DNA from: Prasinococcaceae sp. CCMP 1430
Taxonomy: Eukaryota > Plantae > Prasinodermophyta
Direction: 5' to 3'
Length of the DNA stretch: 40,405 nucleotides
Assembly: GCA_013416795.1 (NCBI GenBank)
Contig: RQSC01000678.1
Span: forward strand, 38,116 to 78,520
Position 1 is the stretch's first letter; the number at the start of each line of letters is the position of its first letter. Shown here in pieces: positions 4,137-40,405 of the stretch. The notes beneath the pieces are model-generated. The model was not told the DNA's origin, ran no database searches, and saw nothing but the letters and a program-made list of their open reading frames with translations. The translations under genes and the position numbers were made by a program.

Positions 4137-7100
4137 CTACCTATTATCAAGCGTCGGCAAGACGCCGCTGGGCGTTGCCGGCGTCGCCGCCAGGACGTCC
4201 TCCGCCCGCGCTGCCTGCGCCCTCGCGGCCTCCTCAGCCAAGCGAGCCGCGACCTCGCCATCCGGCGCCAGTGCGTTCGCGTTTTCAGCGTCGACGACCT
4301 CAAGCGCCCCCCCCCGGGCCTCCACGCCCCCCCTTTCTGCCTGCGTGGTGTGGACCTTGTACCTCGTGAGGAATCCGCGCACGGCCGCCTGCACATACTC
4401 TGCCGCGTGGTAGTGCCCCGCCGTATATTCTGTCTCGGCCTGTGCTGACACCTTGAAGTAGTCCAGCTTTTTCAATATCTTGATGCGAACCTCCTGCTCG
4501 ACGGTCGTGGGCAGCGGGTGCGCCGCGACGCGCGCGGCCAGACTGTAGAGAGTCTCGTGGAAGTTGATCTTCCCATTGTGCACGCTTATGTCGAGATGCC
4601 GCAGCATGGACATCAGGGTGCTCGAGCTCACGCCGGTGCCACGAATGCCCAGCGGCGGCTCCAGCCTGGTGATGAGCTTGGGCAGCAGGCGCCGCTTGAT
4701 GAAGTACGAACCCTCCGTGTCGAGCTCCTGCCAGACTTCGATGAAGCGGTCCATGTGGGCGGGCACCACGGGCAGCGTCTCGGCGTCTGAGCTTGCGATG
4801 ATTTCGTCGAGGATGACGCCGATCACCAGATTGAGCACGATGAGCGCGCACACAACAACAAACGAGGAGAAGTAGAGGATCGCAGCGCCCTCCCATGGGG
4901 TGCAGCGGTTCTCCACGGCCCGGCTGCCGTACCACTCGCGCGCCATCTGGATGCACGGGCTCGACGAGTCAAAGTACACCTCCTCGGCCGTCTGGTCGAC
5001 GCGCTCGCAGATCGTGCCGTCGGCAAGTGTCAGCCGCAGCCAGCGCAGGCCGGTGTCGTCGTCGTCGTAGGGCTCGCACGTGGGCGGCGCGTCGGCACCG
5101 TACTTGACCTCGAGAGCCGCGTTGACCGCCGCAGCGCTCGCAAAGGACGCCACCGCGCTTGTGGCTTGCTGCGCGATGCCTCGGGGGAACAGGGCGTCCA
5201 CGGGGCACTTGAGCGGGCTCAGCACCAAGTCGACGTCGACTATCGTGCCGTCCCCCGACACCTGAGGCATGGTGTAGTCAAGCTGGTAGTAGGCCTCCGA
5301 GAGCGAGTGGCACTCCTGGGTGACCATGGCATCCCACATGATGCCGTTCCACGACTCGCCGGTGGCCATGCGGAAGAGAGTCATCATGGCCGCAGGGAAG
5401 TCTCGGAAGTTGGCGTACCTGTTCAGGTTCTCGCCGTAGCGCACGGAACCGAAGAGGTTCATGCCCATGATCGAGTAGATGAAGAAGAACAGCAGGAGCA
5501 CGCTGCCAACGTTCACGAGCGCGGGCAGCGAGAACAGCAGCGTGTGAAAGAGCGTCTTGAGGCCCTTCGCACGCGGCACCAGCCGGAAGATGCGCGCGAC
5601 GCGAAAGACGCGAAGCAGGCTCACCACGGGGATACCGCCCCCGGTGAACGCATCAAGGCAGAGTCCAATGATGGAGAATTGCACCACCACGAAATCGAAC
5701 TTGTTCCAGGGGTTTCCGAAGTAGTTGCGCGGGCCGAGCGCCCAAATCTTGAAGACCATCTCGAGGAAGAAGATCGTCGTGAAGACGAAGTTGGCCCAGA
5801 AGAGCACGGCCACCCACTCATCCGTCATGTCAGCCGTGCGCATCGACATGAACACGATGTTCGCCATGATGCAGGACATGATGAAGCCGTCGAATGCGTC
5901 CGATTGCACGACGTGGAAGGTGCGCGCGCGCCACTCGCCGTCGGGCGGGCTCAGCCGCACGAGAGGCTTTACGCCGGAAATGATGCGCTGGATGTTCACC
6001 CATGCCTGCTGCTCCGAACTGAGAAACACACTCACGCCGTCGTCCGACTTGTGCTTCATCTCGTTGAACTTGTCGATGGTCACGCCAACGAAGAGGTTCA
6101 TCACGAAGAACGAGCCGATGATGATGAAGGACGCGAAGTACAGCGCCAGCGCGGGGTTGGTGTCGCGGATGGGTTGCGTGGTCGACCCCGTGGAGTCGAT
6201 GCCCTGGTACATGGTATCGAGGAACATCTCGAGCGTGGCCATCTCGAAGAGCGTCAAGATGGACGCGAAGATGTTGTCGAAGTGCTTGTCGCGGTTGTTC
6301 CACGAGGTCGGCAAGTTGTAGTAGTCGAGGCTGGCAGCATGCGTGACCATCGCGGCGGCAGCAGGGCTCTCCACGGCGTTCACGCCGCTGTCGGTCCACA
6401 ATGCCCACGCAGCCGCGAAGCCATCCGCGTCGTCGCCGAAAGCCACCTCGAAGAGCGCGCGCGCGGCGACCATGTCGGTGTGCACGATGCACGACGCTTT
6501 CTCACGCCCCTCTGCGTCTGGAGCACACGCGACGCCACTGCGGACCTCGAAGCCATTCTGCGCCCACCATGCGAGCGCATAGTACTTGGAGCCGGCAAAT
6601 TCGGGCAGGTCGGTGAAGGGCGCGACGTTGGGCATGCTTGGGATTTCGCAGAAGTCCTTGTCAAGCTCCATGGGCTGCAGGCCAAGTGGCCCTCCATCGG
6701 CGTCCACGAAACCTGGCGGGTAGAGCGCAGCCGGGACGTCGAGCTTGCCCGCGCGCGGGCCGAGCATCGGAAAGTCGTCGACCTCCAAGCTCTCGCCGCA
6801 CTTGCCAAACGAGTCGGGCAGCGACATGCCGTTGATCTGCGCGACGTGCCAGATGTCATCGCCGCAGTCGAAGCCGCAGTAGCGCAAACGGCCCAGAAGC
6901 AGGTTGAGGCCCAGGATGCCAAAGATGAGGTAGAAGAGCGCGCACACCAGCAGCACATTGCCGATGGCGGGGATCGCCTTGAAGAGCGCATTCACGATGA
7001 CCTTGATGCCCGTGGCGCGGCTGGCCATGCGCAGGGGGCGCAGCGCGCGGAAGGTGCGCAGCGCGCGCAGCGCGTCGAGCGCGCCGCCGCTCGCGGCGAG

Positions 7101-10100
7101 TCCGACAACGCCAACAATGACGATGAGGAAGTCGAGGACGTTCCAGCCATTGCGAAGGTAGGCATCCTTGTGGGCGACGAATCCCATGGTGATCACCTTG
7201 AGCACCATCTCGACAGCGAAAAGCGCCACAAAGAGGACGTCCAAGCCAAAGAGCGCCGCGCGCAAGGCCTTGCCACTCGACGAGTTGTCGTTGAGCAGCG
7301 CGTTGCTGTCGAGCGCGAGCAGCATCGAGCTGATCAGGATGGCGGCGATGATGCCCAGCTCGAACTTGTTGTGAGACACCACCCTCGCGCAGGCCACGCG
7401 CACCGCGTTGTCCGGCGGGAACACGAAGAGGGAGTTTGCCTCCGGCACGAGGCTAGACAGGAGCTCATCGATTGAGCGCTCTGTCTGCGACGCGTTCGAC
7501 GCGTTCGACTCAGACAACAAGCGGCGAAGTGACGGGCCGCCGGGCTTGTCCGAGAAGCTCTGGCTCCTGGGAATTGAGTTGGCGTCACCCTTGGCGCTCG
7601 GAGAAGCCTTGCTCACCTCGGACGATGCCAGCTTGGCGTCCTCCTCGTCCTCGCCCTTGACGTCGTCCTCGTCCTCGTCATCGTCGTCGTCGTCGGCGGC
7701 AAAATTGTCTAGCAGGATCGCCAGGAAGAGGTTGAGGATGATGTAATTGCCGATGGAGAAGAGCAGCAGGAAGTAGAGCGCGAGCGCGTCGGACGTGGCG
7801 TACATGCCGTCATACATGACCTCGTTCCAATTCTCCCCGGTGAGCACCTGGAAGATGGTGATGATCGACCAGTAGACATCGTCGAAGTTGTGCCGCGGGC
7901 GGTAGGGCCGGCCCACGTAGCGCATGGCGGCGATCTCGAAGACATCGCCGTCACCGTCCTTCTCGCCCGCGAACATCATGCAGCCTTCGACGCCATCCGC
8001 GCGGCGGTCGGATACGAGGCTGGCGACGTCTGGAGAAAACGTCACGGTTGCGCGCTGCTGGGTGTTCAGGCCGGCGTAGATGTCGCCGGCGAGGAAAACG
8101 TCGCAGGGTTCAGTTGCGAGCCCGAACGTGCAGTCGAATTTGGACGCACAAGCGACGCCGGCGTCGTCGACGGACGCGTAGCACTCTCTGTGGTCCGAGC
8201 ACTTGCCTCCGCCACTGAGGAAAGCAGGCACGCCTTGCACCGCGCCTCCTGGGGGGCACATTTGGCCGCCATCGTCACAGAACTCGTAGCGGTAGCCGAA
8301 GAGCTGCATCCCGAGCAGGGCAAAAACGAAGATGAAGAGCACCAGGATGAGGCTGAGGTACGTCACCGAGGCCACGCTCCTGAAGACGGTGGTGATGATC
8401 GAGTTGAGCTCTTTCCACGACCGCGCGAGCTTGAAGACACGCAGCAGGCGGAAGGCGCGCAGCACGGAGAACATGCCGCCGCCGCCCGAGCCGCTCGCCA
8501 AGGTGACGACAATCTCCACGATTGACAGCACCACGATGACGCCGTCGAAGACATTCATGGGGTCCTTGCGGTAGCCGCCCGGGCCGAGCGCGGTGATCTT
8601 CAGGACCATCTCGACGGCGAACGCCGCCGTCAGGATGTAGTTAATGGCGTCGAAGGCAGTGAACATAGCATCGGGCATGCCGTCGAACTCGGCCGCCATG
8701 ACTATGGTGTTGATGACTATGAGGGCGACGATGACGTACATGAACGACTCGTGCTCGACGATGCTCTGGCAGGTGCGCACAAGCTTGCTCGAGCTCTGCA
8801 CGGGAACATCGCCGGGCATGCGCCCACCGTTGTCGAACGCCTTGGCATCGCTGGTCACCTTTTTATCACCAGCGTTGTCCTGAGCGGACTCCGCTTCTTC
8901 GTCGTCGTCGCGCCGGGTGAAGTACAGGTACAGCACAGCCAGCGCCAGGTTGATGGCGTAGAACGAGCCGACGATAATCAGGAAAAGGAAGTAAATCCAT
9001 ACCCAGGGGCTCTTGCCGTCCTGCAGGTCGTACATCACGTCGGTCCATCCCTCCATCGATACGCACGTGAAGATCGTCAGCCACGCCCACAGGATGTTGT
9101 CAAACGAGATGGCGTTGTGCTTCGGGTTCTCGCCGCGCACGCAGGTCAGCTGCACGCCGTCGCCATCCCGCGGACACACGCGCCCCGCGCCACTCCTTCC
9201 GCTGTACGACGCCTTGCCCCACTCGTCCAGCCCCTCCCACGGGCCCTCGACCACTCCCGCATCCTTCAGGAGGTCCCACTGTGCCTCGCGCGCGGCCTCG
9301 ACGTCCTTGGCTTTGCCACCGGCGGCCTTGATCACCTCCAGCCACTCGCACGCCCCGCCTGCCCCACCAGCGTACGCGAGCGCCTCCTCAGAGCACAGGT
9401 GCGGGTGCTGCGCATACAGGGCGGCGAGGTCCCGCTCTTCGTAGTCACCCATCTCGAGAGGCATTGGGTACATCGGCCCCGAGCACAGGTCGCCCTCGGG
9501 GTCCTCGAGCACGTACGTGAGCAGGCCCGTGGCGGTGTCAAAGCCCTCGTAGCCGCACCTGTTGCGCATGCGCTCCGCAAAGGACTGGATGCCCACGATG
9601 CCCAGTATGAAGAACAGGAAGCCGCAGAGCAGCAGCACGTTCCCGAGCATGGGAAGCGAGCTCATGAGCGTCACCACGAGCTTTCGCAGCCCCTCGACAG
9701 AGGTGAGCGTGCGCAGCGGGCGGAGCACGCGCACGGTGCGAATGGACGTGTAGTTGCCGATGAGTCCACTGCTCGCGATGATGCCCAGCAGGACCACCAG
9801 AAAGTCCATCACGTTCCAGGGGTCGCGCAGGTAGGCACCCTTGCCCAGGAAGAAGCCCATGCCCAGGACCTTGAGCATCATCTCAATGACGAAGAGAGGC
9901 GTGAAGACCCACTCGCTCACAGCGAGGAACTTCCCCAGCCGGCTGCTCTCAAAGTTTGGCGCGTTCGAGCCCATTGCCAGCGTGATGCAATTGAGGAGGA
10001 TGAGCAGCAGGATGGCGTTGTCGAAGAGCTTCGAGACGATCGCGCGCATAGCAGCCACCCGCACAGGGTTGCCCTTCGTGAAAACGAACAGCGAGCGCTC

Positions 10101-10376
10101 CGAGAAAGTAGACACGCGCTTGATGCCCTGCGGCGTGAATGACTTGATCGTCGCCTCCGTCATGTCGCCCAATTGTATTCGCCAGTCAACCCCTTCACTG
10201 CCGGCGTCGCCGCCGCTGTCACCGCCGCTGTGCTGCGAAGGGTCACCGGCGCTCGAGCCGTTGGAGCCGCCCCCCACGGCGAAGGGCCCCACAGCATCGC
10301 CGCCGCCGCCCGCGCCAGCCTCAGCGTCCGCACCGCCCGCCTCCTTGGCAGGCGGCATCCACGCGTCCTCGGCCAT
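4137..10376 (-). CDS. Four-domain voltage-gated cation channel alpha subunit, Ca2+-type EEEE filter, intronless, about 2079 aa
   Basis: Four 6-TM repeats with S4 segments IRTVRVLRPLRTL, LRAFRLLRVFKLAR, LRALRTFRALRPLR and LRVFRVARIFRLV. Pore motifs SMEGW, TGENW, TLEMF and TGESW. C-terminal EF-hand-like segment (FIEVWQELDTEG) and IQ motif (EYVQAAVRGFLTR). ATG 10376 (MAEDAW) is preferred; the ORF is open to 10424. Confidence 0.96.
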   Translation of the reverse strand: MAEDAWMPPAKEAGGADAEAGAGGGGDAVGPFAVGGGSNGSSAGDPSQHSGGDSGGDAGSEGVDWRIQLGDMTEATIKSFTPQGIKRVSTFSERSLFVFTKGNPVRVAAMRAIVSKLFDNAILLLILLNCITLAMGSNAPNFESSRLGKFLAVSEWVFTPLFVIEMMLKVLGMGFFLGKGAYLRDPWNVMDFLVVLLGIIASSGLIGNYTSIRTVRVLRPLRTLTSVEGLRKLVVTLMSSLPMLGNVLLLCGFLFFILGIVGIQSFAERMRNRCGYEGFDTATGLLTYVLEDPEGDLCSGPMYPMPLEMGDYEERDLAALYAQHPHLCSEEALAYAGGAGGACEWLEVIKAAGGKAKDVEAAREAQWDLLKDAGVVEGPWEGLDEWGKASYSGRSGAGRVCPRDGDGVQLTCVRGENPKHNAISFDNILWAWLTIFTCVSMEGWTDVMYDLQDGKSPWVWIYFLFLIIVGSFYAINLALAVLYLYFTRRDDDEEAESAQDNAGDKKVTSDAKAFDNGGRMPGDVPVQSSSKLVRTCQSIVEHESFMYVIVALIVINTIVMAAEFDGMPDAMFTAFDAINYILTAAFAVEMVLKITALGPGGYRKDPMNVFDGVIVVLSIVEIVVTLASGSGGGGMFSVLRAFRLLRVFKLARSWKELNSIITTVFRSVASVTYLSLILVLFIFVFALLGMQLFGYRYEFCDDGGQMCPPGGAVQGVPAFLSGGGKCSDHRECYASVDDAGVACASKFDCTFGLATEPCDVFLAGDIYAGLNTQQRATVTFSPDVASLVSDRRADGVEGCMMFAGEKDGDGDVFEIAAMRYVGRPYRPRHNFDDVYWSIITIFQVLTGENWNEVMYDGMYATSDALALYFLLLFSIGNYIILNLFLAILLDNFAADDDDDDEDEDDVKGEDEEDAKLASSEVSKASPSAKGDANSIPRSQSFSDKPGGPSLRRLLSESNASNASQTERSIDELLSSLVPEANSLFVFPPDNAVRVACARVVSHNKFELGIIAAILISSMLLALDSNALLNDNSSSGKALRAALFGLDVLFVALFAVEMVLKVITMGFVAHKDAYLRNGWNVLDFLIVIVGVVGLAASGGALDALRALRTFRALRPLRMASRATGIKVIVNALFKAIPAIGNVLLVCALFYLIFGILGLNLLLGRLRYCGFDCGDDIWHVAQINGMSLPDSFGKCGESLEVDDFPMLGPRAGKLDVPAALYPPGFVDADGGPLGLQPMELDKDFCEIPSMPNVAPFTDLPEFAGSKYYALAWWAQNGFEVRSGVACAPDAEGREKASCIVHTDMVAARALFEVAFGDDADGFAAAWALWTDSGVNAVESPAAAAMVTHAASLDYYNLPTSWNNRDKHFDNIFASILTLFEMATLEMFLDTMYQGIDSTGSTTQPIRDTNPALALYFASFIIIGSFFVMNLFVGVTIDKFNEMKHKSDDGVSVFLSSEQQAWVNIQRIISGVKPLVRLSPPDGEWRARTFHVVQSDAFDGFIMSCIMANIVFMSMRTADMTDEWVAVLFWANFVFTTIFFLEMVFKIWALGPRNYFGNPWNKFDFVVVQFSIIGLCLDAFTGGGIPVVSLLRVFRVARIFRLVPRAKGLKTLFHTLLFSLPALVNVGSVLLLFFFIYSIMGMNLFGSVRYGENLNRYANFRDFPAAMMTLFRMATGESWNGIMWDAMVTQECHSLSEAYYQLDYTMPQVSGDGTIVDVDLVLSPLKCPVDALFPRGIAQQATSAVASFASAAAVNAALEVKYGADAPPTCEPYDDDDTGLRWLRLTLADGTICERVDQTAEEVYFDSSSPCIQMAREWYGSRAVENRCTPWEGAAILYFSSFVVVCALIVLNLVIGVILDEIIASSDAETLPVVPAHMDRFIEVWQELDTEGSYFIKRRLLPKLITRLEPPLGIRGTGVSSSTLMSMLRHLDISVHNGKINFHETLYSLAARVAAHPLPTTVEQEVRIKILKKLDYFKVSAQAETEYTAGHYHAAEYVQAAVRGFLTRYKVHTTQAERGGVEARGGALEVVDAENANALAPDGEVAARLAEEAARAQAARAEDVLAATPATPSGVLPTLDNR

Positions 10377-11268
10377 CGTGGCTCTGTGAACGTCCGCGCC
10401 AGCGCTTGTCGCCGGCTCCCACACCCCCGTCCCCGGACCGCAGCCCGTTGCGCTAAAGCTTCGGCCTGGGAGACATCGGTTCGCTCCGGCCTGTGCGCGT
10501 GCCGGCGCGGCGCAGATGGCGGGTCAGCGTCGTCCACGCACGGAGCGCTACCACGCAGAGGCATTGCGCGGCGGCGAGTGCGATGCTGCCAGCTACGTGC
10601 ACGCGTCGCCATCCCCAGCCACGTCAGGCATCTCGCGCGGCGCGCGGAGGATGCGCGGCGCAGCGCCGCGGACACGCGCCCTCGCGGCGTTCGCGCATCC
10701 GCGCGCCTCGGGATAAAAAAAAATGCCTTCGGCTCGGCGCCGGCTGGCGGCGGCACAGCCAGCGCGCTGCTCGCCCACCTGCCCCCTCCCCGCACGCGCG
10801 CGCGGGCGTGAAGCGCGGCTGAGGGGTCTGCGGAGTCACCCGCGCCGAGGGAAATGACATAATGCGAGGGTCCGTTCCCCTCGCCCCCACTGACCACGCA
10901 CGCCTCTCGCCCCCTGAGTACACAGCGGGGGAACCAAAAAAAAAATGCAGCGACGAGGTCAACGCCGCCGGCGTGCGGCCCGCGTGCTCCGCGAGGCTCG
11001 CGAGCGAGCTCCCGCGGTGGTGGGGCGGGCGGCGATGAAATACAGGGGGGTCGATTGCGCGCCCCACCGCGCGCCGCGAGCCCCGACCTCGGCGCCGCCG
11101 CAGCGGCAGGTGCCTCAACTGCTGCGGGCGTGCCGCTGGGCCGAACGGGGCCAAAAAAAAAAAAGGGGGGGGGGACCCCACCCCACCCACCTGCCGCGCG
11201 GCGCGCGGTGTGGGGCGCCCGCTGCGACGCCTATTCCGGTCCGCGCGGCGCGCGTGTTGAACGCAGCC

Positions 11269-11596
11269 CCCATCAAATCGCATGCGCCTTCGCGCGTACC
11301 CGCGTTTCGGTACGGGCGATTCTCCCATCAAATCGCATGCGCCTTCGCGCGTACCCGCGTTTCGGTACGGGCGATTCTCCCATCAAATCGCATGCGCCTT
11401 CGCGCGTACCCGCGTTTCGGTACGGGCGATTCTCCCATCAAATCGCATGCGCCCGCGGGCGCGCGCGCGTTTCGGTACGGGCGATTCTCCCATCAAATCG
11501 CATGCGCCCGCGGGCGCGCGCGCGTTTCGGTACGGGCGATTCTCCCATCAAATCGCATGCGCCTGCGGGCGCGGTGCGTTTCGGGACGGGCGATTC
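11269..11596. repeat. Minisatellite: 6 tandem copies of a 55-bp unit with internal dyad symmetry
   Basis: Unit CCCATCAAATCGCATGCGCCTTCGCGCGTACCCGCGTTTCGGTACGGGCGATTCT starts at 11269, 11324, 11379, 11434, 11489 and 11544. Copies 1-3 are identical, copies 4-5 are an identical variant, and copy 6 is diverged. Confidence 0.97.
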
Positions 11597-11892
11597 GCCC
11601 GCGCCGCCGCGCGCGCCCGCCCTGCCACGCGGGCAGAAAAAAACGTGCGGACGCGCGCGCAAATGCGCGAATCTCCGCGGAATTCGCGCGAGGTACGTAC
11701 TGAGTGCGCGGGGAAGCGCGGCGGTCGCGCCGCGCCCGCGGCCCCACGCCTCCCGCCCCCTTCCCCTTCTTGCCTGGAAGGGAGCGTGCCACACGTCGGG
11801 CGCGAGGAGCCCCTCCTGCCCGCCGCCCCGCTCTGCCACGCCACGCCACGCCACGCGCGCGCGACTGCGCGACCGTGGCAGCGGCCGCCGCC

Positions 11893-27924: not shown

Positions 27925-30900
27925 ATGCCGGGGCGGGGCGGCGGCCGTGCCGCGCGGCGGGCGGTGGCTTTGGCAGGGGGGGTGGCACTGGCCTTACTCG
28001 CCGCCGGGGGGCCGCGCGCGGCGCGCGGACAGGGCGACGCCGTGGCGACGCTCGCGCCTGACGTGCTCGATGGCGGGGCGCGTGTGGACGTGCGGCTTTC
28101 GGGGCATGGCAGGGCTGTGACCGGCATCCAGTTTAATCTCGCGAGCTGCGACGGCGATGAGCGGGTGGATGTCGAGGCGGCCACAGGGGGGCTCGCAGAG
28201 GCGGCCGGCCTGACGTCACAGGTGTCGGGCTCCACCGTTTTGTTCTTTAACTTCAACGACGGCGCGATCGAGACGACGGGCGTACTGACGACCCTGTCGG
28301 TGCTGCCCGACAACCAGCGCAGTGACGGGTACTGCCTCACTTCGGCGGTTGTCAGCGCGTCTGATGGGGCCCCCATCGAACTGGATCCGAGTGCTCTGTG
28401 TGCCTGCGATGGCTCCTCGGGTGCAACAGGGGCAAACGAGCAAGCGCCACCGCCGCCTCCGTCGCCCTCCTCGCCGTCGACCGGCCAGCCACCGTCACCG
28501 CCGAGCCCACCGCCGAGCGCCGGGGCAGCATCGAATTCGTCAGGCGTCCTGACGCCGTCGCTCGAGGTGTCTGATGGCGGAAGTCGGGTGGACATTACCC
28601 TCGCTGGGCTGAGCTCGGATCTTGGGGGGTTCCAGGCCACCCTCACGTCGTGTGACGGCGAGCCGGTACCCATCGACAGCGCCTCGGGGGGGGCCGCTGA
28701 GCAAGCGGAGATGACGGTGCAGGTCAACAACGCGACTGAGCTTGTGTTCAGTCTCATGGGGGCCACAATTCCCGCGAGCAAGGCTAACAACGACGTACTG
28801 TCGATACTGGCGATCGCCGACGCGGACGTCCAGGCGGGATACTGCCTGTCGAATGTCCAGGCAAGCGACACTGTGGGTCGAGCTCTCGACTTCGACGGGT
28901 CCGAGCTGTGTCGATGCGATCTCGATGAGCCGAACGCCGGGGCGGGCAGCACTGGCGAATCGCCACCATCGCCTCCACCCCCCTCGTCACCCCCCTCGCC
29001 GCCGAACTCTACAGACGGTTTCATCATCGACGAGGACGTGCGGCTCTTCGTAGGAGAGCTGACCGACGGTGGCGTGGACGTGGACATCATGAACCCAGAT
29101 GTGGCAGTGGCTGCCTTGCAATTTACTTTCATCGATCAGGACGGCAACCCACTGACAGTCGCCAGCGTGGGCCAGGAGGGCGCCGCGGCCGACGCGGCCG
29201 TACCTGCCACCGTGAGCGGGGATCTCGTGGCGTTCTTCAGCCTGGGTGGCGGCTCCATCCCTGCCGGTGGCCAGCGTCTGCTGGCTCGCGTCGAGTTCGG
29301 GAGCGCGAACGGCGTGACCTCGGTGTGCCTTGAGCAGTTCGTGGTCACGTCCGAGACCGGCGACGTTCTGACGGCCAGCACCGTGTGCGGCGGCGAGGAC
29401 AACGGCACGGACGTGCTGGCCAACGTGCGCGCACAGCACCGTGTGTGGCGGCACGCCGGCCGTCGCGGGCGGCGAGGACAACGGCACGGACGTGCTGGCC
29501 AACGTGCGCGCCGAGCCGGTGAGCGACGGCACCTTCGACGTACTGTACCGGTCGAAGGTGCCGCTGTCGAGCTTCCGATTCGAGCTGCGCACGCTGCTCG
29601 GCCAGGACGTGACCTTCGCAAGCGCGATGCCCGAGAGCGGCGCTGCTGGCGATGCAGGCTTCTCGGTGGTCGTGCGCTCGACGGGCGCCGTGAGTGGCTC
29701 GCTACTCACCAGCGACGGCCCGCCCGTCCCCCGGTGGTCGCCGCTGCTGATGCGACACGACTGCTGGTAGCGCCACTTGTTGTGGTGCCTGCCGTGCGTC
29801 GAGACCGCTGTCGGCCCCATCCTGAGCGCAGAGGACGGCACCTCCGTGGCCGTCGAGGAGGCGTCGTGCGAGGTCCCCAGCGAGGGCCCCGACGGCCCCA
29901 TCTCGGTTCCCCCGGGACCTGATGGTGCTGGAAACTTCGAATTCCTGCTGCGACCTTCTGAGACTGTCGCCGGGAAGATCGACGTGTACTACAGGTCGGA
30001 TGTTGAGGTGTCCGGGTTCTCTTTCACCTTGCTGAGCGAGGCGGGCACTCCCATCGCGCTCAATACCACGGTGAGGCCCATCGGCCGCGCTGTCGACAAC
30101 AACTTTTCAGTCTTCGAGGCGGGCTTCAGTGGGGGCGTCGTGGGACTGTACAGCGGCCTGGCCAGCCAGGTGCTGCCACAGACAGACTCCGAAGAGGGTG
30201 AGCTCCTCTTGGAAGTGTACACCGGGGCGGACGTCGTCGATGCCACCGCGTTGTGTATCGCAGAGGACGCCTTGGTGACCATCGCGGCGGCCAACACCAC
30301 GGGCGACACGACCGTCTCCGCGGGAGTGCCAGACTGCCTGCCGACTGCCGACGTTGTGCTGTCCACGCCCTCGCCGCGCGCTGTCCTAGGGTCCCTAAAC
30401 GTGAGCGTCGTCTCCACCGAGGCGATGAGCTCGGTGTTCTTCTACGTGCTCCAGGGCGGCTCTGGCACCCCGGCCCGCTTCGACAAGAGCAGGAAGGTTG
30501 CTGGTCTTGCTGTGGATAGCGGCCTGGTCGTCAACACGCTCGACAGCGGCCTGGTCAGTGCAACAGCATCGCAGGCGTCCACGAGCGTGCCAGCACAGGC
30601 TGTGTCGGCAGAACTCGTTTCGATCCCGGTGGCAGTCCCAGACGGCACTGACCTGTGCATCGTCGGGGTGCAGGTGACCGGGAAGGCCGGCGATGCGCTG
30701 ACTACGAGCGTCGTCAGTTCGAGTTTTTGCGACGGCCTCGTGCCACCCACAGTTGCGTCTCCTCCTCCACCTGTTTCGTCCCCCCCACCCCCCCCGGTCG
30801 TGGTCGCACCGCCTCCGCCGCCTCCTGTGGCCATGCCGCCCCCACCCGTCGCCGTTGGGGCGGTCGAGCTCTTCACGCCGACCGCCGTGACTGGCGGCGT

Positions 30901-32086
30901 GGTGGAGGTGTACTACACGGCCACGGCGCCGATCGGAGGACTGCAAATGCGCGTGGAAGTAGGCGGCAATGGCGCGACATTTGATTCTGACGCTGCCACA
31001 GTCGGTGGAGCGGCTGCCGACGCCTTCGAGGTCGTGACGGGTAGCGGTCTTGGACCGAACGTGGTGGCCATCGGCACCGGCGATCCGCTGGACAGGGCGG
31101 CCGGCCAGTCGCTGCTGCTGTCCCTGAAGCTCGCGAATGGCACCGAGGCCGAGGGCACGCTCCCTTGCATCGCCGACGCAATCTTCACCGACACGGAGAA
31201 TCCGCCGCGTGCCATGGACGTGACGTTGCCGGACTGCGAGCAGCAGCCGCAGGCGAACTCACCGCCGCCATCCCCACCCCCGTCACCCCCGCCCGCGCCG
31301 GCGATCCCAGAAACCACCGCCGTGGCGTTCAACATGCGCTTCCCCGGTACGCTGGTCGCGACTGATGCGGATGGCATCGCGGCGAAGTCGGGTCTGCGCG
31401 AGGCCTTCGGCGAGCTGTACAGCGTGCCGCCGACGGCCGTGTCGGTGTTCATGTCGTTCCTGTGCGCAGACGGCGTTGTGCATAGCACACCTCAGCCGTG
31501 CACAGGACAGCGATCCGCCGATATCCCTGTCGTGTCAGCCGACGTGAACGTGGGTCAGGTGGCAGTATCTGCGGCCGAGTCGGTCACGGTCGACGACATC
31601 CGCCAGGCGCTCGCGTCCTCTACGAATGCGGGCATGCAAACCCTCGTGGGCACCGCCGACGCAGACTCGATCGGCGTGTTCGAGGTTGGCACGCCGAGCC
31701 CCCCGCTCGAAGCACCGCCCGCAGCTGCGCCTCCACCGCCTCCGCAGGAGGCAAGCGGCAGCAGCCCTTCGTCGGGCTCCCAAAGTAGTGGCGGGGGTGG
31801 GTTGAGCGGCGGCGCGATCGCGGGCATCGTCGTCGGGAGTGTCTTCGGCGCCTTGCTGCTCGTGCTGCTCACCTGGTGGCTCTGCCAGCGCAGGTCGTCT
31901 TCGGCGGCGGCGCGCGGCGGCGGTTCGAACCAGTTCGCGGTCTCATCGCAGCGCTCACCCGCGCACGGCGGCAGTGCCTACAACGGCGCAGGTGGCAGCG
32001 CGGGCTCGCCGGTCGTCTCCAAGAAAATGTCAAAGAAGCAGCGCGCGGTGATGCGCCACCAGGAGTTCGTGGATGAGGAGGTTTGA
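27925..32086 (+). CDS. Type I membrane protein with at least 7 cohesin-like beta-sandwich modules and Pro/Ser linkers; interrupted by two assembly artefacts
   Basis: Signal peptide (VALAGGVALALLAAGGPRAARG|Q). Repeated modules of about 125-140 aa with a VDV/I...G(F/I/L)QF...G.A..A...IP...L pattern and C-terminal Cys pairs. TM helix AIAGIVVGSVFGALLLVLLTWWLC near 31814-31885, then a short cytoplasmic tail. Frame break at about 29433; spurious stop at 29768-29770 inside a complemented segment. Confidence 0.8.
29732..29805. other. 74-bp segment that is the exact un-reversed complement of the repeat consensus (probable assembly artefact)
   Basis: Base-by-base complement of GCCACCAGCGGC...GCAGCTCTG, as seen intact at 37189-37262. 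Confidence 0.95.
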
Positions 32087-32206: not shown

Positions 32207-33745
32207 TTAAGCGGCCTGCGGCGGCTCCTCGGGAATCTCCCCGAGCTTGTACACCCTCGCCGCGGTCGGCGCGCACGCGGCTCCCGCGCCTGGTCCGAAG
32301 CCACTGGCGGCTCCGTGCTGAACTGCGGGCTGACCGAACGCCACCGTGGGCGAGCCCGCCGCGGCTGGTTGTCCAAACGCCGCCGCTGGCGAGCCGGCGA
32401 CGACGGGGCTGGCGGGAGCCGGCTGCCCAAACGCGGTGGCGGGCGACCCCGCGGAGGCGGGGGTCGCCTGGGGGAAGGCCGACCCCGGAGAGACCGAGCC
32501 ACCTAATCCACCAGGATGAGCCTGCTGCTGCTGCGGCGCCGGCGGCTGCTGCGCGCCGAAGTGGCTGGGCTGCCCGAAGCCGCTCGGCTGCCCGAAGCCT
32601 GCGCCTGCGCCAGTCTGTCCGAAGCCACTGCCAGCGCCTGCGCTCGTCTGCCCCAAACCCGCTCCGGCACTGGGCTGTCCGAAGCCCCCACCAGCGGTCG
32701 CACTGGGCTGTCCGATGCCAGCGCCGGCCGCGGCCGCCTGTCCGAAGCCGCTGGGTTGTCCGAAGCCGCCTGCCGCGACTCCGCCTTGCGCCTGCCCGAA
32801 CCCGCCACCTGCGGGGGAGGCGCTGGCGCCCTGTCCAAACCCGCCTCCGGTCGTTCCGGCCACGCCCTGTCCGAAGCCGCCTCCCGCAGGCTTGCCGAAG
32901 CCCCCGCTGGCAGGCATGCCGAACCCACCCGCAGCCGCACCAGCGGCGCCCTGCCCGAAGCCGCTCGACTGTCCGAAGCCCCCTCCCGTCTGTCCAAAGC
33001 CGGCGCTTCGTTGGCCGAAGCCTCCGCCCGTCTGTCCGAAGCCACCGGCGGCCTGCGCTTGGCCCGTGCCCGAACCGAAGCCTCCTCCTCCCCCGCGGAA
33101 CCCTCCCTGCTGCTGCTGCTCGCCAGCGGGCCGGCCGAACCTGAGCGGTACGACGCCCTGTGGCGCCGGTGCTGCGGTCGGCATGCCGCCGCGCGCCTTG
33201 GAGACGGCCATGAGTTCCTGCTTGCGCGCGTGCGACGCGCGCTGCCACTCCGCGGCGTACGCCTGGAGCGGCGTGCCCGCACGCGCCGCCTCCATCGCGG
33301 CGAAGCGGTCCTCCTCGAAGCTCCAGTCGCCCCCCACGGCGCTCTGCCCGCTGCGCAGCGGCGCGTAGCACGTGAGATGCCACCGTGGCATCTCGTTCTT
33401 GAGGTCGTTGTTCGCCTCGGTGCGCCAGTCGCCGCCGCCGCGCGCGCCGGCATTCGTGTCGCCCACGCGCCCCTGCAGCGCGCCGAATCGGTTGCCCCCG
33501 CCAGCGTGCCCGCCCCCGCCACCCCACCCACCCTGGCCGCCCCACGCGCCGCTTCCGCCCCTGCTGCCGCCGTTGCTGCTGACGCGTGGAGCGCGCGCTG
33601 TGGCCCGCGTCGCGCGCTGCTCGGCGCTCGGCTCGCTCGGTCGGGGCGCGCGCTCGGTCGGCAGCTTCCTCAGCCTCGTGAAAAGCAGGGGAAGGGGGGG
33701 GGGAGGCGGCAGGAGCGCGCTTTTCGGATCAAAATTGCGCTTCAA
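32207..33745 (-). CDS. NUP42: FG-repeat nucleoporin, NUP42/NUPL2/CG1-like; 5' end unresolved
   Basis: The block NDLKNEMPRWHLTCYAP...DWSFEEDRFAA resembles the NUP42/CG1 N-terminal conserved region. Many GGFGQ/AFGQ repeats follow. The C-terminal YKLGEIPEEPP resembles the Gle1-binding motif. No credible ATG upstream of the conserved block. Confidence 0.72.
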   Translation of the reverse strand: MKRNFDPKSALLPPPPPLPLLFTRLRKLPTERAPRPSEPSAEQRATRATARAPRVSSNGGSRGGSGAWGGQGGWGGGGGHAGGGNRFGALQGRVGDTNAGARGGGDWRTEANNDLKNEMPRWHLTCYAPLRSGQSAVGGDWSFEEDRFAAMEAARAGTPLQAYAAEWQRASHARKQELMAVSKARGGMPTAAPAPQGVVPLRFGRPAGEQQQQGGFRGGGGGFGSGTGQAQAAGGFGQTGGGFGQRSAGFGQTGGGFGQSSGFGQGAAGAAAGGFGMPASGGFGKPAGGGFGQGVAGTTGGGFGQGASASPAGGGFGQAQGGVAAGGFGQPSGFGQAAAAGAGIGQPSATAGGGFGQPSAGAGLGQTSAGAGSGFGQTGAGAGFGQPSGFGQPSHFGAQQPPAPQQQQAHPGGLGGSVSPGSAFPQATPASAGSPATAFGQPAPASPVVAGSPAAAFGQPAAAGSPTVAFGQPAVQHGAASGFGPGAGAACAPTAARVYKLGEIPEEPPQAA

Positions 33746-34575
33746 TTCGCGCCGTGGTTGTGCTTCTGTCTGCGGTCGCGGGTGCTATCATTTCCCGGCC
33801 GGCCGGCTTGGGGGGGTCGTTGACTTCCCTGATACTCTTCCCTGCGGAAGCAAAAGCGAGGCAGGCAGCAAACCACAAACCACTGCTGAAACCAGCCTGC
33901 CAGCCCGGCCGGGGGTGCACACACCCGGTGTCTTTCGATGGTCTCCCCCAGTCAGGCGCGCCATCGATCGATGCAGACGAACCAAATGCCATCGATGGAT
34001 CCATCGACGCGTGCGCGAGACTCCCCAGGGGGGATCCCCGCCGCGTGCGTGCGGGCCTGGTCTGGCCGGGGCAGCCCCAACAACAAACCCAACCAACAAC
34101 ACCAACCAACCAATCGCGTTTGTCACCCAAACGCGAAACGCACCGCCCTGCCGCGGATCCGGATCCCAATCCGTCGCCCTCCGACCAAACTTTAGATAGC
34201 TCGCCGTAGCTCGCGCCGCGCCCGGCCCGTGGCGCGCTCCCCGCGCGACCGACCAACACCCGGCCAGACATGCAGCCAGCCAGGCAGGCCAGCCGGAGAT
34301 AAACACGACCACCTCGGGCGTTTTTCCCCCCCTCCCCCTTCTTCTGCCCTGCACATCCGTGGTGGGTCGTTTTCTTCGTCGCGGGCCTTTTGGGCAGCGG
34401 GATCATCGGGATGCGTGGGAAAATTCAGGCAAGCGGGGATTCTTCATCTTCATCGGCGCGGCGTGGCTGGGGGGGACCTCGGGGGAGGTGTGGCGGGCCT
34501 CTCCTCTGTCCTCTCTCCCGCCCACTGCACGGCGCCCGCGGCGCGCGCGGCACACGCTGCGCGCGCGCGGCGCAG

Positions 34576-37500
34576 ACCGTGCCTGGCAACGCTGTGCTGA
34601 CGACCATCGCGGTGAACAACACCACGGACGGCACGCAGCTCTGTGCTGTCGGCCCCATCCTGAGCGCAGAGGACGGCACTTCCGTGGCCGTCGAGGAGGC
34701 GTCGTGCGAGGTCCCCAGCGAGGTCCCTGGTCAGACCCCCGCCGACAACGCCACCAGCCCCGACAATGCGACCGACAGCGGCGGCGGCTTCGTCATCGAC
34801 GAGGACGTGCGCCTCTTCGTGGGAGAGCTGACCGACGGCGGCGTGGACGTGGACATCATGAACCCAGATGTGGCAGTGGCTGGCTTGGAGCTCCACTTCA
34901 TCGATCAGGACGGCAACAAGCTCACCATTGGAAGCGTCGGTGATGAGGGGGCCGCGGCCGCCGCAAACCTGCCAGCACGTAGCGAAGGGAATCGCGTAAC
35001 CTTCATCGACCTAGCAGCCGGCACAGCATCCATCCCTGCCGGTGGCCAGCGCTTGCTTGCTCGCTTCGAGTTCGGGAGCACGAACGGCGTGACCTCGGTG
35101 TGCCTTGAGCAGTTCGTGGTCACGTCCGCGACCGGCCAGACTCTAGAGACCAGCACCGTGTGTGGCGGCACGCCGGCCGTCGCGGGCGGCGAGGACAACG
35201 GCACGGACGTGCTGGCCAACGTGCGCGCCGAGCCGGTGAGCGATGGCACCTTCGACGTACTGTACCGGTCGAAGGTGCCGCTGTCGAGCTTCCGGTTCGA
35301 GCTGCGCACGCTGCTCGGCCAGGACGTGAGCTTCGCGAGCGCCGTGCCGGACACCGGCGCTGCCGGCGACGCAGGCTTCTCGGTGGTCGTGCGCGCGACC
35401 GGCGCCGTGAGTGGCCTGCGCCTCGACGGCCCGCCCGTCCCCGCCACCAGCGGCGACGACTACGCGGTGCTGACGACCATCGCGGTGAACAACACCACGG
35501 ACGGCACGCAGCTCTGTGCTGTCGGCCCGATCTTCAGCGCAGAGGACGGCACCTCCGTGGCCGTCGAGGAGGCGTCGTGCGAGGCTCCCAGCGCCGCCAC
35601 GAGCGACAACGCCACCAGCCCTGACAATGCAACCGACAGCGGCGGCGGCTTCGTCATCGACGAGGACGTGCGCCTCTTCGTGGGAGAGCTGACCGACGGC
35701 GGCGTAGACGTGGACATCATGAACCCAGATGTGGCAGTGGCTGCCTTGCAATTTACTTTCATCGATCAGGACGGCAACCCACTGACAGTCGCCAGCGTGG
35801 GCCAGGAGGGCGCCGCGGCCGACGCGGCCGTACCTGCCACCGTGAGCGGGGATCTCGTGGCGTTCTTCAGCCTGGGTGGGGGCTCCATCCCTGCCGGTGG
35901 CCAGCGTCTGCTTGCTCGCGTCGAGTTCGGGAGCGCGAACGGCGTGACCTCGGTGTGCCTTGAGCAGTTCGTGGTCACGTCCGAGACCGGCGACGTCGTG
36001 GAGGCCAGCACCGTGTGCGGCGGCAGCTCGGCCGGCAGCCCGCCGAGCTCGAGCTCGCCGTTGCCGTGCCTGCACGACCGGTTGCACGCGCGCGAGCCGG
36101 TGAGCGACGGCACCTTCGACGTACTGTACCGGTCGAAGGTACCGCTGGCGGGCTTCCAGTTCGAGCTGCGCACGCTGCTCGGCCAGGAAGTGAGCTTCGC
36201 GAGCGCCGTGTCGGACACCGGCGCTGCTGACGCCGCCGGCTTTACGGTGACCGTCGGTCCGACCGGCATCGTGACTGCTCTTGGCAGCCTGGCCAGTAGC
36301 GACCAGCTGATACCGGCCACCAGCGGCGACGACTTGCGACACGACTGCTGGTAGCGCCACTTGTTGTGGTGCCTGCCGTGCGTCGAGACTGCTGTCGGCC
36401 CCATCCTGAGCGCAGAGGACGGCACCTCCGTGGCCGTCGAGGAGGCGTCGTGCGAGGCTCCCAGCGCCGCCACGAGCGACAACGCCACCAGCCCCGACAA
36501 TGCGACCGACAGCGGCGGCGGCTTCGTCATCGACGAGGACGTGCGCCTCTTCGTGGGAGAGCTGACCGACGGCGGCGTGGACGTGGACATCATGAACCCA
36601 GATGTGGCAGTGGCTGCCTTGCAATTTACTTTCATCGATCAGGACGGCAACCCACTGACAGTCGCCAGCGTGGGCCAGGAGGGCGCCGCGGCCGACGCGG
36701 CCGTACCTGCCACCGTGAGCGAGGATCTCGTGGCGTTCTTCAGCCTGGGTGGCGGCTCCATCCCTGCCGGTGGCCAGCGTCTGCTGGCTCGCGTCGAGTT
36801 CGGGAGCGCGAACGGCGTGACCTCGGTGTGCCTTGAGCAGTTCGTGGTCACGTCCGAGACCGGCCAGACTCTAGAGACCAGCACCGTGTGCGGCGGCAGC
36901 TCGGCCGGCTCGGGCGGCTCGAGCTCGAGCGGCAACGGCACGGACGTGCTGGCCAACGTGCGCGCCGAGCCGGTGAGCGACGGCACCTTCGACGTACTGT
37001 ACCGGTCGAAGGTACCGCTGGCGGGCTTCCAGTTCGAGCTGCGCACGCTGCTCGGCCAGGAAGTGAGCTTCGCGAGCGCCGTGTCGGACACCGGCGCTGC
37101 TGACGCCGCCGGCTTTACGGTGACCGTCGGTCCGACCGGCATCGTGACTGCTCTTGGCAGCCTGGCCAGTAGCGACCAGCTGATACCGGCCACCAGCGGC
37201 GACGACTACGCTGTGCTGACGACCATCGCGGTGAACAACACCACGGACGGCACGCAGCTCTGCGCTGTCGGCCCCATCCTGAGCGCAGAGGACGGCACCT
37301 CCGTGGCCGTCGAGGAGGCGTCGTGCGAGGCTCCCAGCGCCGCCACGAGCGACAACGCCACCAGCCCCGACAATGCGACCGACAGCGGCGGCGGCTTCGT
37401 CATCGACGAGGACGTGCGCCTCTTCGTGGGAGAGCTGACCGACGGCGGCGTGGACGTGGACATCATGAACCCAGATGTGGCAGTGGCTGCCTTGCAATTT

Positions 37501-40405
37501 ACTTTCATCGATCAGGACGGCAACCCACTGACAGTCGCCAGCGTGGGCCAGGAGGGCGCCGCGGCGGACGCTGCCCTGTCGCCAACCATCGGCGACGACG
37601 GCGTGATCTTCTTCGCCCTTGGCAGCACCTTCACCATTCCCGCGGGGGACCAGCGCCTGCTGGCCCGCTTCGAGTTCGGGAGCACGAATGGCGTGACCTC
37701 GGTGTGCCTGCAGCAGTTCGTGGCGACGTCCGCGACCGGCGACGTTCTGACGACCAGCACCGTGTGCGGCGGCGAGGACAACGGCACGGACGTGCTGGCC
37801 AACGTGCGCGCCGAGCCGGTGAGCGACGGCACCTTCGACGTACTGTACCGGTCGAAGGTGCCGTTGGCGGGCTTCCAGTTCGAGCTGCGCACGCTGCTCG
37901 GCCAGGCAGTGAGCTTTGCGACGGCCATGCCCGAGAGCGGCGCCGCTGGCGACGCTGATTTCGTGACGGTCGTGGGCCCGACCGGCGTCGTGAGCGGCCT
38001 GCGCCTCATCAGCGACGGCCCGCCCGTCCCCGCGACCAGCGGCGACGTCTACGCGGTGCTGACGACCATCGCGGTGAACAACACCACGGATGGCACGCAG
38101 CTCTGCGCCGTGGGCCCCATCCTGACCGCGGAGGACGGCGACTCCGTGGCCGTCGAGGAGGCGTCGTGTGAAGTCCCCGACAATGCGACCGACAGCGGCG
38201 GCGGCTTCGTCATCGACGAGGACGTGCGCCTCTTCGTGGGAGAGCTGACCGACGGCGGCGTGGACGTGGACATCATGAACCCAGATGTGGCAGTGGCTGC
38301 CTTGCAATTTACCTTCATCGATCAGGACGGCAACCCACTGACAGTCGCCAGCGTGGGCCAGGAGGGCGCCGCGGCCGACGCGGCCGTACCTGCCACCGTG
38401 AGCGGGGATCTCGTGGCGTTCTTCAGCCTGGGTGGCGGCTCCATCCCTGCCGGTGGCCAGCGTCTGCTGGCTCGCGTCGAGTTCGGGAGCGCGAACGGCG
38501 TGACCTCGGTGTGCCTTGAGCAGTTCGTGGTCACGTCCGAGACCGGCCAGACTCTAGAGACCAGCACCGTGTGCGGCGGCAGCTCGGCCGGCTCGGGCGG
38601 CTCGAGCTCGAGCGGCAACGGCACGGACGTGCTGGCCAACGTGCGCGCCGAGCCGGTGAGCGACGGCACCTTCGACGTACTGTACCGGTCGAAGGTACCG
38701 CTGGCGGGCTTCCAGTTCGAGCTGCGCACGCTGCTCGGCCAGGAAGTGAGCTTCGCGAGCGCCGTGTCGGACACCGGCGCTGCTGACGCCGCCGGCTTTA
38801 CGGTGACCGTCGGTCCGACCGGCATCGTGACTGCTCTTGGCAGCCTGGCCAGTAGCGACCAGCTGATACCGGCCACCAGCGGCGACGACTACGCTGTGCT
38901 GACGACCATCGCGGTGAACAACACCACGGACGGCACGCAGCTCTGCGCTGTCGGCCCCATCCTGAGCGCAGAGGACGGCACCTCCGTGGCCGTCGAGGAG
39001 GCGTCGTGCGAGGCTCCCAGCGCCGCCACGAGCGACAACGCCACCAGCCCCGACAATGCGACCGACAGCGGCGGCGGCTTCGTCATCGACGAGGACGTGC
39101 GGCTCTTCGTGGGAGAGCTGACCGACGGCGGCGTAGACGTGGACATCATGAACCCAGATGTGGCAGTGGCTGCCTTGCAATTTACTTTCATCGATCAGGA
39201 CGGCAACCCACTGACAGTCGCCAGCGTGGGCCAGGAGGGCGCCGCGGCCGACGCGGCCGTACCTGCCACCGTGAGCGAGGATCTCGTGGCGTTTTTCAGC
39301 CTGGGTGGCGGCTCCATCCCTGCCGGCGGCCAGCGTCTGCTGGCTCGCGTCGAGTTCGGGAGCGCGAACGGCGTGACCTCGGTGTGCCTTGAGCAGTTCG
39401 TGGTCACGTCCGAGACCGGCCAGACTCTAGAGACCAGCACCGTGTGCGGCGGCAGCTCGGCCGGCTCGGGCGGCTCGAGCTCGAGCGGCAACGGCACGGA
39501 CGTGCTGGCCAACGTGCGCGCCGAGCCGGTGAGCGACGGCACCTTCGACGTACTGTACCGGTCGAAGGTACCGCTGGCGGGCTTCCAGTTCGAGCTGCGC
39601 ACGCTGCTCGGCCAGGAAGTGAGCTTCGCGAGCGCCGTGTCGGACACCGGCGCTGCTGACGCCGCCGGCTTTACGGTGACCGTCGGTCCGACCGGCATCG
39701 TGACTGCTCTTGGCAGCCTGGCCAGTAGCGACCAGCTGATACCGGCCACCAGCGGCGACGACTACGCTGTGCTGACGACCATCGCGGTGAACAACACCAC
39801 GGACGGCACGCAGCTCTGCGCTGTCGGCCCCATCCTGAGCGCAGAGGACGGCACCTCCGTGGCCGTCGAGGAGGCGTCGTGCGAGGCTCCCAGCGCCGCC
39901 ACGAGCGACAACGCCACCAGCCCCGACAATGCGACCGACAGCGGCGGCGGCTTCGTCATCGACGAGGACGTGCGGCTCTTCGTGGGAGAGCTGACCGACG
40001 GCGGCGTAGACGTGGACATCATGAACCCAGATGTGGCAGTGGCTGCCTTGCAATTTACTTTCATCGATCAGGACGGCAACCCACTGACAGTCGCCAGCGT
40101 GGGCCAGGAGGGCGCCGCGGCCGACGCGGCCGTACCTGCCACCGTGAGCGAGGATCTCGTGGCGTTTTTCAGCCTGGGTGGCGGCTCCATCCCTGCCGGC
40201 GGCCAGCGTCTGCTGGCTCGCGTCGAGTTCGGGAGCGCGAACGGCGTGACCTCGGTGTGCCTTGAGCAGTTCGTGGTCACGTCCGAGACCGGCCAGACTC
40301 TAGAGACCAGCACCGTGTGCGGCGGCAGCTCGGCCGGCTCGGGCGGCTCGAGCTCGAGCGGCAACGGCACGGACGTGCTGGCCAACGTGCGCGCCGAGCC
40401 GGTGA
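34576..40405 (+). CDS. Second cohesin-like tandem-module coding array, partial at both ends
   Basis: Candidate acceptor GGCGCAG| at 34575. Frame 1 is then open to the window end, except for TAG 36352-36354 inside a complemented segment. Same modules as in 27925-32086. Confidence 0.8.
36037..36092. other. 56-bp un-reversed complement segment (probable assembly artefact)
   Basis: Exact complement of TCGGGCGGCTCG...AACGTGCGCGC, as seen intact at 36910-36965. Confidence 0.95.
36335..36389. other. 55-bp un-reversed complement segment (probable assembly artefact) creating TAG 36352-36354
   Basis: Exact complement of ACGCTGTGCTGACG...GCAGCTCTG, as seen intact at 37208-37262. Confidence 0.95.

Follow-up and report, generated by a model that had tools for sequence, protein, structure and literature searches.

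A tandem array of predicted cohesin-fold modules in a prasinodermophyte alga and its possible place within a neighboring membrane protein gene

Layout of the locus

The subject of this report is a tandem array of repeated modules found at one end of a 40,405-nucleotide stretch of DNA, hereafter the window, from Prasinococcaceae sp. CCMP 1430 of the Prasinodermophyta (GenBank assembly GCA_013416795.1, contig RQSC01000678.1, positions 38,116 to 78,520 of the forward strand). The G+C content of the window is 68%, and its genes with long uninterrupted frames are eukaryotic, namely those for PP2A B56, a four-domain voltage-gated cation channel, and Urb2. The array lies on the plus strand, has a period of 873 nt, and extends from ∼34.6 kb to the window end. 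Two types of module, designated A and B, alternate along it, and a single A-B pair of the same family occurs farther upstream in what is referred to here as gene 1 (27925 to 32086, plus strand). As judged from its translation, gene 1 consists of a signal peptide, modules M1 and M2, the A and B modules, three further modules, Pro-rich linkers, a transmembrane helix, and a short tail. The present analysis newly provides the extent of the amplified A-B array, evidence for the collapse of gene 1, and a map of the assembly faults.

In plus-strand frame 1, the array contains a partial B module, six complete A-B units, and a seventh A module, and the module starts are spaced 861, 873, 873, 810, 873, and 873 nt apart. 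The initial annotation had proposed at least 13 modules in an array still open at the window end; the count of seven A modules, six complete B modules, and one partial B module bears this out, and the seventh A is indeed cut at position 40405. Tandem Repeats Finder missed the array because the period is greater than 500 nt.

The units are labeled u0 to u7, with positions inside them numbered along the canonical 873-nt unit. The first of these, u0 (34589 to 34758), is the last third of a B module (canonical 716 to 873) with the variant tail CEVPSEVPGQTPADNATS; it matches canonical 716 to 770 exactly over 55 nt and is 94% identical to u2 and u3. Unit u1 (34759 to 35619) is a diverged A-B unit of 861 nt, or 287 residues, with the linker TPAVAGGEDNGTD. 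The 873-nt unit u2 (35620 to 36492) contains the only stop codon of the frame and both of the complemented blocks in the array that are described below. Canonical A-B units of 873 nt are formed by u3 (36493 to 37365), u5 (38176 to 39048), and u6 (39049 to 39921), with u5 serving as the reference and as the query for the structure model and searches. The diverged unit u4 (37366 to 38175) is shortened to 810 nt, or 270 residues, and has the short linker GGEDNGTD and a short tail. Finally, u7 (39922 to 40405) comprises an A module and its linker up to the window end. A unit length of 291 residues, as first described, thus holds for most of the array and fails for u1 and u4.

The DNA sequences of u3, u5, u6, and u7 are 99-100% identical to one another, and u1 and u4 are 83-89% identical to these. 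No differences separate the B modules of u3, u5, and u6 (100% identity), and u7 is the same as u6 over its entire length. With inner units of such high identity, the copy number can readily change by unequal crossing-over. The array is a young tandem amplification of a 291-residue dyad of two paralogous modules, A and B.

Coding character of the array

Between 34576 and 40405 there is one stop codon in plus-strand frame 1 versus 6 to 90 in each of the other five frames. This single stop in 1,943 codons, a TAG at 36352 to 36354, falls within the second of the complemented blocks, and the 5.8-kb frame that had been described as open after correction of artifacts is upheld in that way. The lengths of the units differ only by multiples of three. 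For the diverged units, the ratio of nonsynonymous to synonymous substitution rates (dN/dS) is 0.43-0.56, and there is an excess of synonymous changes (Fisher p = 0.007 and 5e-5), which indicates that the units have evolved as protein. Judged from its sequence, the array is real coding DNA.

Each complete undamaged unit contains four or five N-x-S/T sequons. In the intact 291-residue unit there are five (NAT, NGT, NNT, NTT, and NAT), together with four Cys residues, two per module, and the several sequons and paired Cys residues noted earlier are thus all accounted for. The sequon density, 1.7 per 100 residues, is 4-28 times that in three intracellular proteins encoded in the same window (0.06-0.40). 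With a Cys pair in each module and linkers rich in Ser/Gly and in sequons, the 291-residue dyad reads as the extracellular part of a glycoprotein.

Predicted fold of modules A and B

The fold assignment rests on a model predicted by AlphaFold for u5 from a shallow alignment, with a predicted local distance difference test score (pLDDT) of 74.9 overall and values of ∼88 and ∼78 for modules A and B, respectively. Its overall architecture is that of two β-sandwiches. When compared with solved cohesin structures, module A (residues 12 to 136) and module B (residues 152 to 279) give Z-scores of 10.3-10.6 and root-mean-square deviations of 2.9-3.9 Å over 113-118 residues. The top 25 rows of structure matches are all cohesins, the best row for any other protein having a Z-score of 8.9, and Foldseek assigns the u5 model to cohesin with a probability of 1.0. 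In the predicted model, the modules thus display the nine-stranded jelly-roll of the cohesins and superpose on them over most of the domain.

The amino acid sequences are far removed from those of annotated cohesins. Pfam Cohesin (PF00963) was not matched by whole units, gene 1, or 14 single modules, even at E values of up to 1-10. Searches of Pfam, NCBIfam, and PDB sequences with single units gave nothing meaningful, and a word-index protein search with the 1,350-residue open frame gave no match. With a profile of the 14 modules, the best PDB sequence match was a cohesin from Ruminococcus flavefaciens (5n5p_A) at an E value of 0.009, and the next was at 0.34. The nearest language-model clusters contain Prasinodermophyta proteins, and in one cluster 31% of the members carry Pfam Cohesin. 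Modules A and B, the remaining modules of gene 1, and the bacterial modules described below can all be aligned as one family, with a DG motif, a Leu, and two Cys residues in common. On the basis of the predicted model, we conclude that A and B are cohesin-fold modules of a rare, unannotated subfamily.

Relatives of the modules

An exhaustive HMMER search of 1.84 billion representative proteins returned only 14 relatives, none of them from this organism. A close group shows 45-50% identity and derives from a marine eukaryote metatranscriptome and from ENA assemblies. The second group consists of tandem-module proteins from uncultured marine bacteria, several of which end in dockerins or in type IX secretion system (T9SS) sorting domains. 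The dockerins are found in P0006, P0009, and P0012, and P0009 additionally gives a weak Pfam Cohesin match over its matched stretch (E 8e-6), in which no individual stretch passes. No relative emerged when metagenome contigs were scanned twice, once with one unit as the query and once with an alignment to which the relative had been added.

Of most importance for the array are P0015 and P0017 (834 residues) from an uncultured relative, which are colinear with the flanks of the A-B pair in gene 1. They match the tail of M2, the Pro-rich linker, and A at an E value of 4e-30, and the tail of B with the head of M5 at 7e-15. Between these flanks lie an A-B pair, an M2-like module, and a further A-B pair. 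The ends of P0020 are the same and enclose a single A-B copy; P0001 is cyclic. The layout of these four sequences indicates that, in the nearest known relative, the A-B repeat has been amplified inside the orthologue of gene 1.

Two observations on the relatives may be added. The M2-like copy in P0001 and P0015 aligns to the M2 module of the window, and the amplified segment therefore differs between the two species. In P0002 (429 residues, from an ENA metagenome assembly), an unrelated multi-pass membrane protein is attached to a B module and the start of the module that follows it, and the sequence looks like a chimeric metagenome contig rather than a genuine fusion.

Complemented blocks in the sequence record

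Three blocks in the window are complemented without being reversed, and all of them are confined to the A-B repeat family. The first (36037 to 36092, 56 nt) lies in u2 and is the non-reversed complement of canonical 418 to 473. The second (36335 to 36389, 55 nt), also in u2, is the exact non-reversed complement of canonical 716 to 770 and holds the TAG codon mentioned above. The third (29732 to 29805, 74 nt) lies in gene 1 and is the non-reversed complement of canonical 697 to 770. When the blocks are un-complemented, u2 and the B module of gene 1 agree with the canonical unit at every base of these stretches. Matches that are only reversed are limited, in the window, to low-complexity runs. 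To our knowledge, no biological process produces complement-only DNA, and the three blocks are therefore faults of the sequence record.

The edges of the blocks coincide to the base with other breakpoints. The array starts where the second block starts (canonical 716), and the left piece of gene 1 ends where the first block ends (canonical 473); each such coincidence is expected by chance about once in 873. These junctions may all be joins made in one faulty step, or else the edges of the blocks may have been set by genuine junctions in the reads. Overall, the repeat region looks like a patchwork of small repeat contigs (canonical 418 to 770 and a u1-like 387 to 770) joined through overlaps of 55-74 nt.

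With respect to other irregularities of the assembly, the only N characters in the window are a run of 22 at 2936 to 2957 and a single one at 27767, both of which abut (GC)n-rich runs. The left edge of the array lies 13 nt past a similar (GC)n tract, and such runs seem to be where the assembly breaks. At 11269 to 11600 there is a tandem repeat with a 55-nt unit (six copies, 95% matches), apparently intergenic; the length of its unit is that of the artifact blocks, which may be a coincidence.

The break in gene 1

The A module of gene 1 (28990 to 29432) is read in window frame 1 and ends at canonical 473 with a u4-like linker. At the break (29433 to 29434), an orphan A base at 29433 is followed by the right piece, which restarts at canonical 387. 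This piece (29434 to 29880) provides the linker and the B module and is read in window frame 2. It resembles u1 as far as 29731 and the canonical unit from 29732 on, a change that coincides to the base with the left boundary of the 74-nt complemented block, and its tail, CEVPSEGPDGP, is followed by a module of a different kind. Two copies of a 44-nt word, 79 nt apart, lie at the break, where the reading shifts from frame 1 to frame 2.

The linkers on the two sides of the break, u4-like in the left piece versus u1-like in the right, are a 21-nt indel and one single-nucleotide polymorphism (SNP) apart. The two pieces are consequently from different units, and gene 1 holds at least two units that were collapsed at 29433. 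An intron was considered as an explanation for the 79-nt stutter and rejected: the repeated word is without AG/GT, and no 79-nt GT-AG intron restores the frame. The A module of gene 1 is 96-97% identical to u2, u3, and u5, and its linker and B module are 94.7% identical to u1. The gene 1 pair had been called near-identical to the array modules, which for B somewhat overstates the likeness.

The left edge of the array

The first base homologous to the repeat unit is 34589, equivalent to canonical 716, which falls midway through the B sandwich. The DNA on the other side of this boundary (33746 to 34588) is unique. It occupies the space between the start of a minus-strand FG-repeat gene and the array, and includes a (GC)n-rich tract at 34530 to 34575 and an in-frame ATG at 34412. 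This upstream DNA shows no similarity to the unit or to gene 1 when compared as given, complemented, reversed, or reverse-complemented, and the idea that it is a transformed copy of either one was rejected on these grounds. No signal peptide or trace of a 5' exon was found in 33700 to 34588, and the ATG at 34412, the only one in frame, yields a 55-residue Arg/Gly-rich leader that lacks a signal peptide.

The properties of a stand-alone gene, namely a start and targeting signal of its own, a complete first domain, a stop, and a 3' end, are accordingly not displayed by the array, the 3' end being outside the window. Its frame has neither a signal peptide nor a membrane anchor, and gene 1 has both. 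As assembled, the array is rich in sequons and Cys residues yet has no secretion signal and starts in the middle of a domain, and in this form it is most likely not a natural gene.

The minus-strand gene that separates gene 1 from the array (32207 to 33745) encodes a short conserved N-terminal region followed by ∼25 FG repeats of the GFGQ type. Its product looks like an FG nucleoporin of the Nup42 kind, with no Pfam match at an E value of 0.001.

Discussion

The initial annotation had offered two readings without choosing between them: a second gene of the same family, or the misplaced middle of gene 1. Given the linkers, the stutter, and the frameshift, the collapse of gene 1 at 29433 is borne out. 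A stand-alone gene as assembled is contradicted by its start in mid-B, the lack of a signal peptide, and the unrelated upstream DNA. The balance between the two leans towards misassembly, and we put at roughly 0.5 the probability that the array is the displaced interior of gene 1, belonging between its halves at 29433, and that there is one giant gene.

The product of such a gene would be a giant type I membrane protein composed of a signal peptide, M1, M2, at least nine A-B units, three more modules, and a transmembrane helix. It would possess more than 20 cohesin-fold modules and would project from the cell surface. In the course of assembly, the repeat would have been built from small repeat contigs, with some of the overlaps written in complemented form. 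The two halves of gene 1 would then have been joined directly, bridging the gap, and the array placed beyond the following gene, 4.7 kb downstream. The tails of the B modules are of interest in this context. The first B of the array ends in CEVPSE..., like the last B of gene 1 (CEVPSE...), and the edge units of one array often resemble each other. A single giant gene explains together the frameshift in gene 1, the lack of a start in the array, the like B tails, the coincident breakpoints, and the architecture of the relative.

Several considerations weigh against a displaced interior. Neither 29433 nor 34588 is marked by an N gap, and the contig is continuous from the 3' half of gene 1 through the FG-repeat gene and into the array. 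That near-identical units of 873 nt were resolved, each with its own SNPs, suggests long reads; if long reads do underlie the assembly, the order is probably real and the array a second locus. Real junctions in the reads could also have defined the edges of the complemented blocks. No unit of the array is identical to either half of gene 1, and nothing therefore ties the two together physically. Lastly, the array is cut by the window end at 40405 and its far end is outside view.

It is on the continuity of the contig from gene 1 through the next gene, free of N characters, that the foremost alternative draws. According to this explanation, which we regard as rather unlikely, both loci are real: 4.7 kb downstream of gene 1 is a much longer paralog whose 5' part alone (the signal peptide, the first modules, and the initial half of its first B) is absent or wrongly joined at 34588, and the short array of gene 1 itself was collapsed at 29433. 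The gene 1 copies do differ from every array unit, with identities of 94.7-97%, and the (GC)n tract before 34588 resembles those beside both N sites, where a local dropout could have taken the 5' part. Such an arrangement, however, requires two separate assembly faults and two arrays of one unit kept 97% alike; moreover, 33700 to 34588 contains no trace of a 5' exon or signal peptide, and the repeat of the relative sits inside the orthologue of gene 1.

An explanation compatible with any of the others, and an improbable one, is that the number and order of the units are largely the product of the assembler, for example of a repeat-cycle walk that filled a gap, in which case the real array might be much shorter or much longer than seven units. 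The B modules that are 100% identical in u3, u5, and u6, the identity of u6 with u7, and the patchwork with its complemented overlap blocks are as expected from such a process, but the individual combinations of SNPs in each unit and the diverged u1 and u4 at fixed places would not arise from a simple loop. Very unlikely indeed is an assembly that is right apart from the complemented blocks, with the array a recent 5'-truncated segmental copy of the gene 1 repeat that was then amplified and, having no secretion signal, is either untranslated, made in the cytosol from the ATG at 34412, or a gene in the making: the clean 34588/34589 junction, the in-frame ATG, and a unit identity of 99-100%, which implies a very recent amplification, are set against a junction that falls to the base on the edge of an artifact block (about 1 in 873 by chance if the two are unrelated), sequons and Cys pairs that make sense only in a secreted protein, purifying selection on the diverged units, and a gene 1 that would also have to be a frameshifted pseudogene.

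If the array does belong inside gene 1, we infer that the protein would extend from its membrane anchor as a long, glycosylated series of cohesin-fold modules, in effect a scaffoldin-like stalk on the algal surface that would bind partner proteins or form a fiber of the wall or coat. A scaffoldin carries several cohesins in one secreted or anchored chain; the array provides at least 13 modules in one frame, and a signal peptide and anchor only if it is part of gene 1. By analogy, it may be speculated, though we think it unlikely, that one surface protein, well in excess of 3,000 residues long and with more than 20 cohesin-fold modules, uses its A-B sockets to dock dockerin-tagged secreted proteins, as a cellulosome-style display on the cell wall whose copy number is free to vary by unequal crossing-over. 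Were this true, the protein could be part of a eukaryotic cohesin-dockerin display system.

The cell wall of these picoalgae is chemically unknown, and genes for the usual wall polymers were not found (PMC7455551). An abundant repeat glycoprotein of this kind is for that reason a candidate component of the wall or coat. The published assembly of Prasinoderma coloniale was obtained from PacBio reads and comprises 22 chromosomes (PMC7455551), whereas the present genome is in at least 203 pieces with runs of N. Blocks that are complemented and not reversed mark a systematic fault of the assembly at repeats, and gene models that cross them will be broken or will be assigned introns wrongly. Should the array be the middle of gene 1, the public gene model is wrong for one of the largest surface proteins of this alga.

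Other features of the window

The voltage-gated cation channel is encoded on the minus strand at 4137 to 10424 by an uninterrupted frame of 2,095 codons. Its four domains match Ion_trans (x4, E 6e-241) and are followed by a GPHH/IQ-associated tail, an architecture of the animal Ca/Na channel type in a picoalga. Between 23014 and 23283 there is a long, imperfect (TCC)n run of 90 copies, and the region from 23 to 24 kb shows strong GC and AT skew; the run is probably a tract coding for poly-acidic or Gly/Ser sequence on one strand.

Comparison with known systems

By fold and layout, the array can be likened to the cellulosomal scaffoldins such as CipA, ScaA, and ScaB. Its modules are 125-140 residues long with the jelly-roll of the cohesins, and the Z-scores of 10.3-10.6 are to CaCohA2, Coh6 of A. 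cellulolyticus ScaB, and the cohesins of C. thermocellum CipA. In both cases many modules are arranged in tandem on flexible linkers, and if the array is joined to gene 1, anchorage at the cell surface is a further point in common. The algal modules differ in that they do not match Pfam Cohesin and are only 12-20% identical to the solved cohesins. They contain a conserved Cys pair and are separated by sequon-rich linkers, their host is a eukaryotic alga, and a transmembrane helix serves as the anchor.

Among the membrane proteins of eukaryotes, cohesin-fold domains have been described in the TMEM132 family of animals (PMC6030884). These are likewise type I membrane proteins, functioning in adhesion, with extracellular cohesin-fold domains (cohesin and Ig). 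The likeness noted here is one of architecture, and TMEM132 has a fixed set of a few domains in contrast to the tandem array observed here.

At the level of sequence, the array belongs to the same family as the "GFQF" modules of uncultured marine bacteria of the FCB group and Marinimicrobia (P0003 and P0006 to P0013), with E values from 1e-23 to 7e-4. The motifs DG..dV.Y.S...iaGFQF, GF.v, and IPAG are common to both along with the two Cys residues, and the bacterial modules are in tandem as well. The bacterial proteins differ in ending in dockerins or type IX secretion sorting domains and in having 2-12 modules. Modules of the A type have relatives only in the related alga and not among the bacterial "GFQF" proteins.

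The closest counterpart is the orthologue of gene 1 represented by P0015, P0017, and P0001. At 45-50% identity, it agrees with gene 1 in its A and B modules, in their order, and in the modules that flank them, and in both species the repeat is in tandem. The repeat unit of the orthologue, however, contains three modules (M2-like, A, and B) and is seen in two copies, whereas in Prasinococcaceae sp. CCMP 1430 the A-B dyad alone is repeated in at least seven.

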